The position numbers were made by a program, and so were the translations under genes. The notes below the pieces were generated by a model that was not told where the DNA came from, searched no databases, and worked only from the letters and a program-made list of their open reading frames with translations. A DNA stretch of 64,000 nucleotides. It comes from Klebsormidium nitens. Its lineage: Eukaryota > Plantae > Klebsormidiophyceae. The stretch spans positions 62,001-126,000 of the forward strand of contig DF236954.1 in the NCBI GenBank assembly GCA_000708835.1, written 5' to 3'. Of the stretch, positions 11,953 through 21,638 are shown in pieces; the stretch's first letter is position 1; the number at the start of each line of letters is the position of its first letter.

Positions 11953-12660
11953 GGCCATCCGTCGTTGCATTGCCTGCAGTTGCTGACAGACCTTCGTTGG
12001 GTTAGTCGGAAGATAGAAGAACGGGGATCCGTCGAATGAAGTGTACCTTATTACAATAAACATCGTTGCGTCGAATTCTAAGGCTGAGTCAGCCCGCTGC
12101 AAGCTAGCCAAGCTTGCTGAATCGTAGATCCGGGAAGCCAACGGTCCTGATCAGAGTCCAGACAAATCTGCAAGTAAGACCTGTGGCTTGCGTTCAGGTC
12201 CGTCAGAACTCTTTCAGTGTTGGCCCACATAGCTCCTAACAACACGAAGTGTGGACGCTCTTCAGAGTCCATACTACAAGAGCAGACGGTTAGCAGAAGG
12301 TTTGATCGGTTATGGCACTGCGCACCCGGTACTTGCAAAAATAAACCTCAGGCCATATTGTTTGATTGAGATTCGGTAACATGTTAGCATCCGGAGTCTG
12401 GGCCTGAAATTTGAATGAGTCGATCTGCCCACCCGGTGATGGTCTCTATTCTTATAAGTGATGCCGCAGCCAGTGCCGCTTTAGGCTTCTCATGACATAC
12501 ATATAATTACGGTTAGGGTGCGTTCTTGCAAGCCAATAGCCTCCTCCGCCGACACAAGCGCGTCTCTGGATTTGCGAACCACAATGAACACCTTCTATAT
12601 AGAGGTACTGCACAAAAGTGGCAGACTGATCTCAATGTATGTCGAGTAGCAGACTAAACG

Positions 12661-12790
12661 GTGGCCCTGGCCGGCTTATGCCGCACTGCGACCCCGGCCG
12701 CCGCGTCTTAGGCCCGGGGCCGGGCGGCCCCGGGCCGGGCCCGGGCGCGGCCGCGCCGGGGCCGCAGGCGCTCACGGTACCCACCTCGGC
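12661..12790. promoter_or_regulatory. GC-rich island with short palindromes about 600 bp upstream of the RLK start
   Basis: 12711-12765 is 55 nt of pure G/C. It contains the hairpin GGCCCGGGGCC-gggc-GGCCCCGGGCC (12711-12736) and the palindrome GGCGCGGCCGCGCC (12744-12757). A regulatory role is inferred from position only. Confidence 0.4.
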
Positions 12791-13372
12791 TCAGGTCCGG
12801 TACCGCACTGGTTGTTTTCCCTGGCACCCGATTGAAACCTGGTGTCAACACTTCCAAGTTCCAATTCAGCCTTCAGGCTACCATGACGTGCATAATGCAG
12901 AAATGGAAGGCGGGTGCCCGAATTGGCGCACGCCGCATACAGCACTGAGCAGGCGACTTGGGGTAGCTTTGCTCAAAGCAAGAGGAAGCACTTAGCATAC
13001 ACAATCATGACGATACATAGAGGAATTGCAGCAAGTGTGCAACTAGGTAAGACTTAGCTGAAATCTTCGTTGGAGCCTTCCAGAAATTTTGATCAAAAGA
13101 GCCTTGTTGACTTCACTTCCAGGGCGTACAATGGTAGTTCATTAAAGCAAGCTACGGACGCCGCAACAGGCCAGCACAGAAGGATGATGCCAGGTCCTTA
13201 ATGAAGTTTGAGAAAGTTCATTTGAGAAGCTCTATCACAAGTCATCATTAAAGGTAACACCTCATAAATAGCACGGCTCTTGGACCTTAGTGCCCGGCCC
13301 TCCAGGTGTCCATCACTGCCCTAATGGCTTGAGCTGGTCCCGCAGTGTTTCTAGCTCCCATCAGCAATCAGC

Positions 13373-16300
13373 ATGTTGCAGAGGGTGGATAAAGCCTTCT
13401 ATTACAAGCGGACCTCCATTGGCTTCGCTGTCAGCTTAGCTTTGCTAGTGTTTGCTGAGCGCAGCAGAGCAGACTTGGTAGAATCTGCACCTAGACCTGG
13501 GGCTCCTCTTCCTCCACCCATTCCTTCTGGCGAATGTCCCCTGGTCTTCCTGCAGGCAGACATACAGTATGCAAAGCAGACTGCATGCTCCTCAGGTAGG
13601 AACCGCATGTTGGTGTCAGCTAAACTTCTGCAATTCTTTCCAATTATTGGCTTGAAATATCACACTGTAGGTAGAACACTTGAAACTTTAAGGTCATAGT
13701 AAAGCCCTCAGGTGTGTCTGAAACCAACTCTTTATCTATACGAAGAAGTTGGGACCCTACGTGGCAGGCAACATAAGTGGAAGGATACACAGCTCCAGTA
13801 GACAAAAACTTCCTATCAAAGACTTTGGTAAATGAACAAGTGTCCCCCGAGCAAGCAACCTGGAAGATGGAAGGTTCCTTAGCTACACCCCCTCATCGGG
13901 CCACAAAGAATTTATCGTAGGACAGAGAGCTCGGTTTGCGCTTATTGGTCCATGACTTACAGTTCTGATAAATTACCCCTGTTGATAGTATATGGGTAAT
14001 CTAAAGCAGACCTTCATTAGATTGAGACACCCAGGCTCTGAGACCTGGGCTTACATGTCCCAATGCACGTCCTGCCACTGACAGAATCCTGAGCATGGTC
14101 TTGATAATTGTGAAGCTGACAGTCGGTTTGCTCCTTGGCTTCTTCAGGCACAGCTACTGCGAGCAGTGTAGGCGCAGCTGTTGCATCTGCCAACAGCCTA
14201 GCTACCACATGCTGCAGTCAACTGAAGGCTGTCCTTTGGAAGGCACGAGGGCGGTATGCCAACGAGACTGGACGCCTCCTCCTGCCTCAGGCATCTGCTG
14301 ACACTTGTGTCCAGGTACACATCTGAACTCAGTGTTTTTGTTCAAAGTCTTGCTTGCTAAGTCTACCAAATGCCCAGTCTTGGTTTCATATGATTGGCGC
14401 TCTGCTCCTAGATTGATGGTACTAGAAGAGTAGGGGTTCCCATGGAGAGTGCATTCGAGGGCTGGATCTCAAGCCGACTGATGCTCCAGCGAATTAGCCT
14501 GTAGAGTACAATGATGAGAATCTTGCAGGACACGATGGACTGTCTGCTTCCAAAGGCAACGCAGTATGCTGAGACAAGCTGCGAATCAATGCCCAAAGGG
14601 GTTTTTTTTCGCAGAGTTTGAACAACTCGGTGATAGCTGCTGGGCTACCTGCTGTTGGCACGTGCCAAATTGAGAGCGATGTATTCTCGGAAGATGCGGG
14701 GAAAGCATGTGGCGACGATCTCACGACTGTGTACAATTTTTGGTCTGCATCAAATCGGACTTTTCCAGGTATGTCAACGCTGCTATGAGTGTCAGTTGTG
14801 AAGATACTGATACTTTTGTTGGAGACAATGCTAGAACAGAGGGCTGCTTCCAAACGGTTTACTGGAAGTCCATCTATCAGGAGGTGATGTTCTTTTCAGC
14901 CATACTCAGATCGTCATGCACGAGTTGAGCTTATTATGGCATTACCAACACTGCAACGTTCTGAAGGACGGCTCGCTGCGAGGTGCGCGCAAGAAGAAGA
15001 CACTCAAAAGCTCGTTTCGAGCTTGTATCCCTACATATTTCTGAAGCAGCCCTATCGTACTTGCAGGAACGGTTGGTATCAGTTGCTATGGAGCAAATGC
15101 AGACTGCGGTCTCTGTACCACCCTCATTCAGAACAAGATTCTGTCACTAGGCAGCAGCGCCACGGCCTTGCTAGCATCGACGTCATGCCAAGGTAAGTTC
15201 CAGAAGGATATTGTAGTCCCTCTAGGAAAGATGCTTGCTTGATTTGAAGTACGGAAATCTTTCATTGCTTGTGCGCCTGAATGAAACAAGAAGGTTCAAG
15301 TCTGAGATAATCATCCGGAGACTTCTTCACGGAAAGCGCAGTCAACCGGAGACGTCCGTTGATGGCCTTTTTGTGCCGACTTCTGCACTTGGAACCAAAA
15401 ACTTGAATATTGAAGCATTCCTGCATACCGCAACGAACCTGCCTGAAACGAACCTGAGAGGCGAGGGTCCCGCCTCCAGTCTAAGAGTCCAAGCCCTCCT
15501 TTCGCTAGATCTGCGACTCGTTCATGTAGCTCGGTAGCAAAAACAAGAGCTGGGCTTGGTAAAAGAAAGGATTCTCCGGCAACGAAAAGTCGCAGGGTTG
15601 GGCAGGCACGTGATATCCCAGACTGTTACCCTTTTTCCGCAGATCTTGCTCAGGTTGCAATGGCCGCGGCGGCATACCCCCTCGCCATCGCAAACGGCAT
15701 CGCTCGGTGCCTTTACACCGTGGACATTGCACCCATTCCTCAAGCAACCAAGTGCACGTCGTACGATTGGTCGAGGCAGAACTGGACGTCCATCGTTCGC
15801 AGCTGCGGGCCGGAGAAGTATCGAGCGGACCGCTGCTGTAATCTTATATACGGACAGTACCAGATGATGCTGGCAGCCAGCCTGAACAAGACGAACTACG
15901 TGTTGGACCAGGTGAGACGCGCTTCGCATGGATGTCAGGAGCGATCGCGCGCGCGCACAGGAAGATTTTGCTGCTAAACAGGCCTCGTTAGCACCGTGGT
16001 TAAGGCGCTAAGCAGTCCGCCCACCCAGGGTCTGCTCGGCGTCCCGTTTACCTTACTCTGGTCCAGGGTCTGGTGAGGAGAAACCAAGTTCCGGTTACTT
16101 TAACCAGAGTCTGGTCGAGGGTCTGGTTAAATTTTCAACCAGACTGTCAATTCGGAGGGTTTGAGATCTTCTTGAGACCAAAGCGCGTCGTTTCTTTGCA
16201 CGGCCATAGTGGGGTGCTGCCTGACAATAGGGTCCGACCATCTTGGCCACAACCTGCTTCTACGCGGAAATCTGTGCTGTATCATACTGCAGGTAGGCAT

Positions 16301-19300
16301 TCGTATCTCCATTTCGTACCTCAGACAGGCGATACTTGTATTTTGCTACCTACGGATATGGTTGAAGGATTTGTTTTCACCGGCACTGCAATCTGTTGAA
16401 GCGATCCGTTTTTCCGATAGCCCCTTTTGGAAGGCGCCTTTGCCGGGGCGAAAACGGCGAGTCACCCGACACTTCTCAACACCGGTGGTTTGCTCGTTTG
16501 CGGAGTCTCCTTCTTTTGTTTGTTCTTTTTGCCCGTGGAAACACGTTCATACGATCCTCCGCAACCAGGACCTACAAAACTGTCCAGTCGAGGTAGTAGC
16601 TCTCACGGAGACTCCGCAATACCCTAGGCAAAGGACCTTCAACTTCTCTTTTCACTTCAGGGGCAATCCGACGTATGCTTCTCGGAATTCAAGGCTTCAC
16701 TCGTCGCGCAAGGCATTCCCCCCGCCACGCCAGAGCTCTGTCGCGTGACACCCGCAAGCGGTCTCTTGAACATCGGTTGTTTCAACTACTCCACACTTCA
16801 ACAAACGATTCCCACCCGTTACTTCCATTACTTTGCGGGCAACTGCACGCGTGCGTCGCCCGACAACTGCCGCCACTGCACACAAACTCTCATCGACGTT
16901 GGAACCGAGCTTGCGAACAACACCAGTGTCGAGTACCTGAACTCTTGCCAGCAGCTGGCTGTGCATCAGTATTACCGGTGGCTTGGCAGGATCGACTTAC
17001 CACCCGAGCCAGCGAATTGCTACTATCAATTTCCCCCGGGGCTGGAGCTCACGATAGTGCCCTTACCCCCGGGCAAAAGCTCGTCCAAAGTTGGCCTCGT
17101 AGCCGGGCTGAGTTCCGCAAGCGCGGCTGTGCTTCTTGCGGTACTAGCGGGTGTTGCCTTCTTCCTGTGGAGGCGTTATCCTCTGTACAAGGCCGAGTGG
17201 GACGCCGAGAAGAAGACGCTCGGCCGCTTATCGTCGCTGCGACAGAGGGTCGTGGGGACGCGGTTGCAAGTGTTCACGAAGAAGCAGCTGAGTAAAGCGA
17301 CCCAGGACTTCAGCGAGAGCCGTTTGGTGGGCGTTGGGGGTTCGGGAAAAGTGTACGTCGGAGAGCTGAACGGGGAAGTAGTTGCGGTGAAGGACGCCAC
17401 GTTTGGGTCCAACAAAAATGGAGCCAAGGTAAGAAGGCAACTTGAGCTGTACAGGATGTGAAAAGCCTTTGTTATTAGGAACGCGATCAGTACTTCGCAG
17501 TCTAAACTTCTCTTACACGCATCTTTGATCGCCCCGAATCGCTCCAAGACTGCCTTTGGAAAATAATGATCTTGGGAAAAGGCGTTTTCTTGGGGAGTGG
17601 CTTCGTGATCAAAACCAAGTGATCAAAGGTAATCTGGGGTGCAAGATGGGTTCGGGTCGGGGGGGGGAACTAGATTGGAATTTCTTGCTTGGACGGTGGC
17701 AATATGACGGTGGACTAGGAGCGGCCGCTTGTTTCGGTTCGTGTCCAAGCCCTCCAGACAATTCTGCTCATCCATCGGTGGAAGTCTTTACTCTCCCGTC
17801 CTTCCTGGCACTTTTTGGCTCTTCAGAACTGACAGGTTTTGTCCTCGCAACAACACGAATCGTTTTCTCAATGATCGAAATACAGAAGGATTCGAGAGGT
17901 CTGTAGGACATACGCCATAATTGGCATCGAACCCGACATTGACTATCGGCGGGTTGGTCAAAGGGCACTTGATAAGCCACGAGCTGGTCAAGTACACTAA
18001 TGGTCAACCTGTGTTTGCTGCAGGAAGCATGGAACGAGGTCGCAACTCTGGCCCAGTACCGGCACCGTCATCTGGTGGTCCTTAAGGGCTGCTGCATCTC
18101 CGGAACGCACTCCTTGTGAGTTGGCCACTGCCTTTGCACTGCAGGCGAGAGAGTTGTCTGCGCTTCTTGTTGCTCGTTCGGGATGTCAGCTTGTTACAGA
18201 AGTTGTGATCTTCAGTCGCTTGATTTGGGCAGCTCACAGGAAGTTCGACGCCGGATCCCTTTTGAAGCTCTTCTCAGGGCGTTGATGGTTTCCGCCGCGT
18301 TCTTTCAGCTCCACTTCCTCGTGTCCGTCACAGCCCTACAACACCTTGCACTGCTCGTCAATACACTTGTCCTGGCTGCCAACCACAGACTTTCGACGCT
18401 TTGCAGAAAAAGATATACCGACCCGGGAACAGCTGCTTGACCATAATTGATTCCCTCTGCAGCCTGGTCTACGAGTTTCTGGAGCAAGGCAGCGTCGACG
18501 ACCACCTGTGCCCGGTGGGGGTAGTCCCGGTTGGCCGCCCCGCTGAGCACAGTGTGCGCGCGCACTACTTGGACTGGCCCACGCGCGAGAAGATCGCCCT
18601 GGGGACGGCCAAGGGGCTGGCCTACCTGCACGAGGTGAGTCAAGTCGCCGTGTCAGGAGAAGCTGATAAGTTTCGAAGTTCCGACCCTTTCAGATAGGAG
18701 GAACTCGATTTGGAAGAAGGAACAATCTGCTGATGCTTCATGAGATTGAGCTTTTGTCTGCGATTTTTGAGGCCGGTGATTTGAAGATCGAGTGTCCGCT
18801 GATACTAAACTTTTCTGATCATCCCCTTAACCGCAAGCTCGTTGATTGGGGCTTCGTTGGCATCGTTTCTTCAGGGCCTTTTCCGGAATGAAGTCGGAAG
18901 ACACACAGACATTTGCAAGCAGGAGTTAGTGGCATGGCAGATACTCTGCTCTTGGTCATTCTAAGTTCCACCTGAGCTGTCTGTTTGCGGGTCCTGCAGT
19001 AAAGGCGACATTTTTCCCTTGATTCGACAACGGTCCGTAAAAGCTATATCTTTTCTCCCCCAAGAGTGTAAGCCGCGGTGTATTCACCGAGACGTGAAGC
19101 TGAGCAACATCTTGCTGACCAACGAATTTGAAGCCAAGTTGGCCGACTTCGGACTTGCAAGGCGTACAGACCCGCATGACACGCACGTCACCACAGGTGG
19201 GTGTTTCTTTCCGGAATGAAGCATGCGGTAGCCATGACTCAGTGCATCATGTGCATCGGATTCAAAAGCTTCACGCACGTAGACACTAGGTGAGCCTCAC

Positions 19301-21638
19301 TTTATTGTGCCTTACTCGGAGTCCAAGAAGCTGAGAAGGAAGATTTCCAGGCGGCGGTAATTCAGAAGCCTCACCCTTAGGGTTGCGGTCTCTCGCCGTT
19401 TCCTCGACGCTCGGAGGACTGCTCTTACTCAGTTGCCTCTCCAAGTACGGTACTGAGACGAGAGATTTGTGCTTGAGCACTCCTGCTGGTCATCACATAC
19501 GTTGGACAACCGGCTCCGGGCTGTCCCTGCAATTGACCCCTCTTATAGCAGCAAGGATGACTTCACTGAGTTTGTGATTCACTTTTCTGTTTGCAGCGAT
19601 CGCCGGCACGTGGGGCTACTTAAGCCCCGAGTACATGGCCACCGGGAAGCTCACCGAGAAGAGTGACGTGTACAGCTTCGGGGTGGTGCTGCTCTGCCTC
19701 GCGGCCGGGAGAAGGCCCACTCAACCCAACGGACCAGAGGACCAGGTAAGAACTCGGGGCGGTACCCTCTCCGTCTCTGGTTCTTGAGCCGAAAATGATG
19801 CTGATAAGGCATAGCTGGGCGGCTCGCTTTTACAGTACGCTTTGACCAGACGTTCATTTAGTTATGTCCACTCTTTTGACATCAGCTTCGGATTGGGGTG
19901 GTTGCGGAAACGCTTCCCCAATTTGCGGTTGATTCGAGCGGTGACCGTGGCACTGGTGGGGACCTTCGCCGTCAAGTTCTCGTTAACCAGATCAGAAACG
20001 TTTCGTGCCGCCAAAAGCCTGGTCGAAGCGTCAATCAACAGCTTTACTTTCGACTCGTACGTACCGTACCGTACCCAGCGCTTCGAAGTCACAAGCCGCC
20101 CCAACAAGGTGCAAGGTTTCTTGGAGAGTCTTTCTGACAAGAACCCGCCGTAGATCGCTTTCGCCCCCTCGTTGGTTGCCTTTCATCTTTAGGAAAGTAC
20201 ACTCTGCAAGTCCAACAGAGGGCGAATCCTACTTTCAATCGCTCTTGTCATCATTCCGCCAGATCCACCTACCGGAATGGGCGTGGTCCCTTGCGGAACG
20301 GAACGAGCTCGAGCAACTGATCGACCCGCGGCTCGAAGGGGAGCAACGGGAGTACGCGGCGAACATGGAGCGCACGACCAAGGTGAGAAGTCGCCCGTCT
20401 CTCTTCTCTCAGAACACGTCAGGGCGTACGTCAGCTTTTGAAAGGGCGGCAGGGAACAGATGGGCTGGCGGCTGTCAAGAAGGGGTTTCGCGGTCACGGT
20501 GCGGAACTGATCATGTCGCATCAAAAATGGCGACCACGCACCTACGCATACCCCCTTTTCTGTCAATGAACAAGATCAGTGCTTCGCAGCGCCATGAAGA
20601 GAGACATCATGAACTTTGTCGCTCCAAACGAGTCTTCTGCCGCTTGCAGTATTTCCTGCAATAAAGGGTATTATTGGATCGGACTCGTGACGTTGCCCAG
20701 AAATTCTGATTAGAACGGCGTTGTATCATCGACTTTTCACCGACGTTGTGTTATAGACTTTTTCCCGGCGTCCATCAAGCCGGTCCCGGTGCTTTCAGGT
20801 CACCAAGAGCCACTGGTGTAAAATTTCGGCAACATGAAAGCAATACTGCGAGCTTGCAGTCGCCCTATGGTTGTTTTGGGTAAAGTCTTTATGGGTGCCG
20901 GTCGCTCACCTAAAGGTACTACCACCACCCCGACGTCCTTCAGGAATGACTCCTACCAGGTCAAACTTCCTTTCAAGTTGGGAATGTCAGTCTCTCCGAT
21001 CCGCTGGGCCTCCTTGCGCAATAGAGATGGCGTGTTCTGGTGTTACTGACGGCGGCGGAGGCAGCTCGATCCTCGAGCTTGCACTTTTCGATGGGGCCAT
21101 CGTTCAGCGGCTTTGTACTACTGCGCCAATGCGAGTCAACGCGACTTTCGGAAGGCAACGAATCAAGTACATATATCATTGATCGCTTCTATGCTAGAGC
21201 TTTGTATTCAAAAGCGAAAGAGGGCGGGGACCCCCGCCTGTATGCAGAAAGCGCGCGCAGTTCAAGGGCACCAAAACCGGGTGGACGAATTGGCTGCTTA
21301 CTTAACTCAACAGGTTCCCTTTCGTTCCGGTTTCTACTTTCTGTGATCAGTCTTTTGAGTCTTTTTAACCCCTTTTCCAGATTGCTCTGCTGTGCGTCCA
21401 CACGGCGGCCAGCGTCCGGCCCAGCATGCGGCAGTGCGCGGACATGCTCTTGGGGCGGATGGAGGTGCCCCGGCTTCCGAGGCGCCCCCCGACCCTCTAT
21501 ACAATCTCCTCGTTGGCGTCGTCCGATCCTGATAGTTCAGCGGGGCTTTCCTTGGGGCAACAGAGCTCGAGCCTGAGCACTGGGGGCGCCGGAGGGTTCT
21601 CCACTTCAAGCGATCATGATGCGAAAAGCATCCCTTAG
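13373..21638 (+). CDS. Receptor-like Ser/Thr kinase (RLK/Pelle) with signal peptide, two tandem SPARK-type Cys-rich domains, a TM helix and an RD kinase domain
   Basis: 12 exons: 13373-13595, 14148-14314, 14615-14768, 15067-15192, 15643-15911, 16661-17428, 18024-18115, 18463-18634, 19067-19196, 19597-19745, 20263-20382, 21381-21638, all phase-compatible. Kinase motifs: [52 protein letters not shown] helix: [27 protein letters not shown]. Confidence 0.88.
20800..21110 (-). mobile_element. Possible degenerate pogo/Tc5 (CENP-B-type HTH) transposase fragment in the last RLK intron
   Basis: The minus strand reads ...[34 protein letters not shown] (about 20925-21035), resembling the Tc5 HTH pattern 'lrekA..ia..lg...FkaS.gWl..F..r.gi'. 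It has a stop and a frameshift; no TIRs were identified. Confidence 0.4.

Follow-up and report, generated by a model that had tools for sequence, protein, structure and literature searches.

Gene structure at the locus

A 64-kb stretch of DNA, referred to below as the window, contains at positions 13373-21638 of the + strand a gene predicted to encode a receptor-like kinase (RLK) with two SPARK domains in its ectodomain. The splice junctions were read base by base, and the resulting model consists of 12 exons whose summed length of 2631 nt corresponds to 876 codons and a stop, with compatible phases and zero internal stops. Donors were GT throughout the chain, and all acceptors were an AG following a pyrimidine tract, with the exception of that of exon 9. 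An in-frame stop at 13352-54 lies directly upstream of the ATG of exon 1. The predicted signal peptide encoded in exon 1, a hydrophobic core behind a K/R-rich start, was recognized by sequence inspection and hydropathy. The open reading frame (ORF) track shows the gene only as fragments, and the 12-exon structure is that of the hand-checked model. The product, about 875-876 residues long, is very probably a receptor-like kinase with type I membrane topology.

An earlier note on this DNA had proposed a 12-exon chain, and the reading of the junctions bore this out. The peptide fragments that it quoted were all found in place on the + strand, and its range of 13373-17428 runs exactly from the start of exon 1 to the end of exon 6. 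It had also described six small exons in 13373-15192: six exons do reach 17428, and the shorter interval holds four of them, not six.

The K. nitens protein GAQ77883.1 (885 aa; UniRef100_A0A1Y1HIZ9, 'Protein kinase superfamily protein') was collinear with all 12 exons in tblastn at about 75% identity, with Met1 of the protein falling at 13373, its final residue at 21635 and the E values for the individual exons between 1e-12 and 1e-127 (Table 1). An exon-by-exon collinear match of this kind is far beyond chance. A second protein, GAQ86782.1, was collinear with all 12 exons too, at lower identity than GAQ77883.1. In orthologous ORFs from other assemblies, the limits of conservation coincided exactly with the ends of exon 6, and the ORFs continued into ...GAK/V....

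Table 1. Exons of the SPARK receptor-like kinase gene in the window and their alignment with K. nitens GAQ77883.1
Exon	Position	Strand	Content	Match to GAQ77883.1
E1	13373-13595	+	First ATG of the ORF, signal peptide, module 1 Cys1 and Cys2; donor GTAGGA, phase 1	Residues 1-75, aligned from the same ATG, 77% identity, E 3e-24
E2	14148-14314	+	Module 1 CC pair, N-E-T sequon, Cys5; SPARK PF19160 match	tblastn E 9e-18
E3	14615-14768	+	Module 1 Cys6 and Cys7	Residues 135-187, 79% identity, E 3e-21
E4	15067-15192	+	Module 1 Cys8 to Cys11 (C-x6-C-x2-C ... C)	Residues 177-228, 69% identity, E 9e-16
E5	15643-15911	+	Module 1 Cys12 (15708-15710), 14-residue linker, module 2 Cys1-Cys4 and N-K-T sequon (from 15753)	Residues 246-318, 77% identity, E 1e-33
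E6	16661-17428	+	Module 2 Cys5-Cys12 (to 17020), membrane helix (about 17087-17179), juxtamembrane region, glycine loop, VAVK lysine	75% identity, E 1e-127
E7	18024-18115	+	Kinase helix C region	
E8	18463-18634	+	Kinase hinge to helix E, ends ...AYLHE; strong donor GTGAGT	
E9	19064 (or 19067)-19196	+	Catalytic loop (HRD) and DFG; Pfam Pkinase E 8e-10; start uncertain	
E10	19597-19745	+	Activation segment end and helix F; Pfam Pkinase E 1e-7	
E11	20263-20382	+	Kinase C-lobe	
E12	21381-21638	+	Kinase domain end, Ser-rich tail, TAG stop 21636-38	Residues 801-885, up to the final residue of the protein

Just upstream of the gene there is a G+C-rich stretch (window 12640-12790) in which Gly/Pro runs are encoded on both strands; ORFs at 12639-12995 (+) and 12632-12784 (-) extend over it. 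This stretch is probably low-complexity DNA.

Domain content of the predicted protein

Pfam scans were run exon by exon, and residues, cysteines, sequons and hydropathy were counted by a codon walk along the exon coordinates. SPARK (PF19160) matched exon 2 alone with 29 bits (profile 30-71), above the gathering score of 25 bits, and exon 6 alone with 16-18 bits (profile 63-151), below that score. Exons 1, 3, 4 and 5, which are too short when taken singly, gave zero Pfam matches.

The cysteines of the ectodomain provided a second line of evidence. There are 24 of them, in two sets of 12 (residues 55-246 and 261-433), and the 12-Cys signature of the SPARK domain is therefore present twice. The gaps between successive cysteines are 16, 23, 0, 30, 18, 14, 25, 6, 2, 23 and 23 residues in module 1, and 16, 9, 0, 29, 20, 12, 21, 7, 2, 22 and 23 in module 2; the two sets run in parallel, and the Cys2-Cys3 loop alone differs. 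Each module is approximately 190 residues long and has one conserved N-x-T sequon. Hydropathy indicated a single membrane helix behind module 2 (residues 456-486), which places both modules between the hydrophobic N-terminal leader and the membrane helix, the position expected of an extracellular domain.

An RLK/Pelle-type kinase is predicted on the same polypeptide, subject to the reading of the exon 8/9 junction discussed below: Pfam Pkinase matched exons 9 and 10, and the region is collinear with residues 536-821 of GAQ77883.1, where that protein has its Pkinase domain. The kinase motifs are complete, with the glycine loop and VAVK in exon 6, HRD and DFG in exon 9, and SPE in exon 10, and the kinase is of the RD Ser/Thr type. 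For a paralogue, the nearest solved kinases in a PDB sequence search were BAK1, FERONIA and IRAK4.

Evidence for two SPARK copies

The SPARK matches of exons 2 and 6, taken alone, are complementary and in order, and they could be the halves of one SPARK domain with a large insertion, split by exons 3-5. They are therefore not proof of two copies, and because exon-level Pfam matches alone are ambiguous in this way, the copy number was settled through the relatives. Full-length Klebsormidium proteins were gathered by a library search with exon 6 and a word search with GAQ84805.1. GAQ77883.1 scored 58 bits against SPARK in two stretches, the better of which (residues 53-210, profile 5-143) corresponds to exons 1-4 and includes the region equivalent to exon 4. 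Two Pfam SPARK stretches and Pkinase were found in six more proteins: GAQ89420.1, GAQ89583.1, GAQ79963.1, GAQ89360.1 and GAQ86783.1 from K. nitens, and one ORF of a K. subtile transcriptome. In GAQ79963.1 the best stretch was the second module (residues 256-373, profile 29-150), equivalent to exons 5-6. A small SPARK hidden Markov model (HMM) built from four land-plant SPARK domains found two domains in each of these double-SPARK relatives, and one in GAQ84805.1. The 24 Cys columns, spaced as in the window gene, were conserved in all of the eight double-SPARK Klebsormidium relatives. Finally, module 1 of the relatives aligned with module 2 by hhalign (probability 92%, E 6e-7, 108 columns), with the CC pair, the N-x-T sequon and the later cysteines in register. 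A single interrupted domain would not be expected to give two 12-Cys sets with matching gaps, two separate passes over the profile in the relatives, two domains per protein with the land-plant HMM and an alignment of one module with the other, and it is the least credible of the readings considered here. That the modules align profile to profile indicates that one SPARK domain was duplicated in tandem to form the ectodomain, an event that, judged from these alignments, evidently preceded the diversification of the family.

Direct comparison of the modules within the window gene was less informative. BLASTP of exon 2 against exon 5 matched the CC motif alone (E 1.5), because the two modules are too diverged for a pairwise match. 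An HMM that was built from exon 6 homologues and represents module 2 in its C-terminal half gave only 1-2 bits against exons 1-5; exons 3 and 4 were aligned at the expected profile positions, at scores that were not significant. The same HMM did not find a second SPARK gene in a six-frame translation of the 64-kb window.

The locus might also be divided into two genes, a secreted SPARK protein encoded by exons 1-4 (13373-15192) and a single-SPARK receptor kinase beginning at exon 5 or exon 6. K. nitens does have at least one annotated single-SPARK RLK, GAQ84805.1 (656 aa), which matches the window only from exon 5 onwards, and exon 5 also aligns with the N-terminal half of its single SPARK domain. 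However, exon 4 ends in phase 1 at a strong donor (GTAAGT) with no stop, and neither exon 5 nor exon 6 has a Met or a signal peptide at its start. Exon 5 holds the last cysteine of module 1 together with the first four of module 2, so the modules are not separable at an exon boundary. Moreover, the whole chain is collinear with single K. nitens proteins and with K. subtile entries that are complete Trinity transcriptome ORFs of 877-884 aa containing both modules and the kinase; since these ORFs are complete, a related alga transcribes the two modules and the kinase together, in a single message. Two separate genes are thus very improbable. Taken together, the exon-level Pfam matches, the 24 cysteines, the domains of the collinear relatives and the hhalign result upheld the proposal of the earlier note that a receptor kinase with a tandem double SPARK ectodomain is encoded here in one gene.

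The acceptor of exon 9

A further alternative to an intact double-SPARK receptor kinase concerns the junction between exons 8 and 9. Exon 8 ends ...CAC GAG/GTGAGT, and the region of the next exon reads ...CCCCCAA GAG TGT AAG. The acceptor predicted by homology (19062-63) is AA, not AG, and would start exon 9 at 19064. All relatives examined (10 of 10 from Klebsormidium) have LH-x-x-C-x-P ahead of the catalytic loop, and GAQ77883.1 reads LHEECKPRC. An AG at 19065-66, 3 nt downstream of the AA, would start exon 9 at 19067 in frame; a conserved Glu of LHEEC would drop out, leaving a product of 875 residues. The AG at 19063-64 would cause a frameshift and a stop about ten codons later if joined to the strong donor, and would be in frame with one residue gained if joined to a weak donor at 18638. 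The in-frame rescue through 19065-66 is favoured because every other exon is intact.

If the AG at 19063-64 were used with the strong donor, the gene would be a decaying or kinase-crippled copy, with a stop before the catalytic loop, and would yield either a double-SPARK membrane protein devoid of the kinase or a message targeted by nonsense-mediated decay (NMD). The reading CCCCCAA/GAG, at a place where all relatives examined keep the LH-x-x-C-x-P motif, is in keeping with such decay, as is the fact that joining GTGAGT to the first AG past the pyrimidine tract would break the frame. On the other hand, the other exons contain no stop or frameshift, the full set of catalytic motifs is retained, with 70-84% identity to GAQ77883.1, the in-frame AG lies just 2 nt beyond the out-of-frame one and costs a single Glu, and the weak donor offers another in-frame route. 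A crippled copy is therefore considered unlikely.

Several points nonetheless weigh against the reading of this locus as an intact, expressed double-SPARK receptor kinase of the Klebsormidium clade. The splicing of the 12-exon chain was inferred from DNA, and it is homology and Cys spacing that extend the two SPARK modules to their full length. The AA at the exon 8/9 acceptor may mean that the kinase lacks one residue of a conserved loop or is mis-spliced in part. An identical protein was not found in the protein and ORF collections searched with exon 6 and with GAQ84805.1. Lastly, the binding of a ligand and the steps downstream of it, which are outlined below, would be pure conjecture by analogy.

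Phylogenetic placement

A maximum-likelihood tree was inferred from 31 rows of the part equivalent to exon 6 only, and was midpoint rooted. The window gene fell in a clade with 100/100 support together with GAQ77883.1 and four ORFs of other assemblies, and this clade was nested in a larger Klebsormidium group. Riccia and other land-plant SPARK RLKs, which had been recovered in the library search with exon 6, formed a separate group in the tree (Riccia and two others, 100/99 support). For the exon 6 part, then, the window gene groups with the K. nitens SPARK RLKs and apart from the land-plant subfamilies. Because of the midpoint root and several long branches, only the near neighbourhood of the tree is firm.

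The window gene is, on these alignments, evidently an orthologue or a close co-orthologue of GAQ77883.1. The two share all 12 exons in order, two SPARK domains and a Pkinase domain, 24 cysteines at the same spacing, and the same 100/100 clade. Among the differences, the module 1 Cys2-Cys3 loop of the window gene is shorter by 5 residues, and no canonical AG stands in the window gene at the position of the homologous exon 8/9 acceptor. A word search with exon 6 recovered ORF fragments of Logan and JGI assemblies at 75-81% identity and paralogues at 33-50%. Between K. nitens and K. subtile, orthologues share 90% identity or more, whereas the window gene is only approximately 75% identical to GAQ77883.1; it is therefore either the gene of a Klebsormidium lineage further removed, or a paralogue outside the K. 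nitens annotation. With 25% of residues differing, the window gene and GAQ77883.1 would be either orthologues from two lineages or paralogues, and not the same copy.

Other sequences recovered

Several of the sequences recovered departed from the double-SPARK kinase pattern. GAQ84805.1, described above, may be a true single-SPARK member, or its gene model may be missing small upstream exons. GAQ81555.1 (K. nitens, KFL_000830370, 525 aa) aligned with exons 1-6 only and ends 8 residues past the boundary equivalent to the end of exon 6; either its gene model is truncated because an intron was read through, or this is genuinely a double-SPARK protein without a kinase. In the land plants, KAK9292329.1 of Liquidambar formosana (820 aa) scored 212 bits over three Pfam SPARK stretches and carried part of a kinase; it is either a multi-SPARK receptor or a fused gene model. 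Eight metagenome contig loci (L001-L008) matched only the kinase start, with no SPARK, and were set aside.

Comparison with published SPARK receptors

The SPARK domain was defined by its 12 cysteines, and PF19160 deposited, by Montero et al. 2021 (PNAS 118:e2105281118, PMC8237591), who found it in SPARK-I/URK-2, URK-1 and RKF3 RLKs and in glycosylphosphatidylinositol (GPI)-anchored proteins of land plants. The same study reported 17 K. nitens RLKs with SPARK, more than 10% of the RLKs of that species, which were monophyletic and "mostly" had "two tandemly arranged SPARK domains". By description, and leaving gene by gene identity aside, their architecture, in which mostly two SPARK domains are followed by a membrane helix and then a kinase, is exactly that of the window gene. 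The gene is accordingly assigned, with a probability of about 0.92, to the Klebsormidium clade of SPARK-domain RLKs of that study, and two tandem SPARK domains in one ectodomain are what the double-SPARK members of this clade possess. The earlier note knew SPARK as a single-copy domain and had regarded a two-SPARK receptor as new. That part of its proposal must be given up: the note itself had named prior documentation of double-SPARK RLKs as grounds for dropping the novelty, and the double-SPARK RLK architecture in Klebsormidium has been known since 2021 (PMC8237591).

The land-plant SPARK RLKs (SPARK-I/URK-2, which includes ARK and SPARK1, URK-1 and RKF3) resemble the window gene in having a 12-Cys SPARK domain (PF19160) before an RLK/Pelle kinase, but they have one such domain, and they lie outside the Klebsormidium sequences in the exon 6 tree, as far as its midpoint root and long branches allow. 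The window gene is not a member of SPARK-I/URK-2, a subfamily with one SPARK domain that is confined to land plants and delimited by kinase phylogeny: it has two modules, its nearest relatives are all from Klebsormidium, and in that tree the land-plant SPARK RLKs are outside. The role of ARK in arbuscular mycorrhiza has no counterpart in the alga of the window gene. GPI-anchored SPARK receptor-like proteins, such as rice OsSRL1 (cited in PMC8237591), also display a SPARK ectodomain at the cell surface, and are set apart by description in that they have no kinase and have a lipid anchor in place of the membrane helix.

Predicted structure and possible function

An AlphaFold model of the paralogue GAQ81555.1 had a mean predicted local distance difference test (pLDDT) score of 63, with values of mostly 70-85 in the modules, both of which were predicted to be all-helical. 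A PDB sequence search and Foldseek with a paralogue found no solved relative of the ectodomain, giving kinase N-lobe matches only, and a wide VIA structural search with the model returned only weak rows for the ectodomain. Two of these rows pair residues 227-305 of the model, the N-terminal half of module 2, with GPI-anchored co-receptors: LLG1 (6a5d_B) at Z 5.3 over 75 aligned residues, and LLG2 (6a5e_D) at Z 4.3. Both Z scores are below the noise level for helical models, where chance matches occur. LLG/LORELEI co-receptors hold RALF peptides for FERONIA. It is a long shot, based on a predicted model, that the N-terminal half of each SPARK module might be a distant structural relative of these small Cys-rich helical co-receptors, in which case the tandem-SPARK receptor could be an ancient built-in ectodomain for binding peptides or wall fragments that predates the land plants.

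By analogy with other RLK/Pelle receptors, the SPARK modules would be mostly helical units outside the cell, each locked by six disulfides. Binding of a ligand or partner by the ectodomain would change receptor pairing, and the RD kinase would then phosphorylate itself or a partner and pass the signal on. The earlier note had rightly described the ligand of the SPARK domain as undefined. Two later papers (PMC11287157 and PMC13174206) added no SPARK ligand or structure, and the question of ligand and role is not more testable through the window locus than through the published genes.

As one more member of this family, with about 75% identity to a protein in the K. nitens annotation, the gene carries little weight as a discovery. 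It has some practical use: it adds to the double-SPARK receptors of Klebsormidium an orthologue whose protein the searches of the collections did not recover, points to a definite anomaly at a splice acceptor within the kinase domain, and provides a hand-checked 12-exon model where ORF tracks give fragments.

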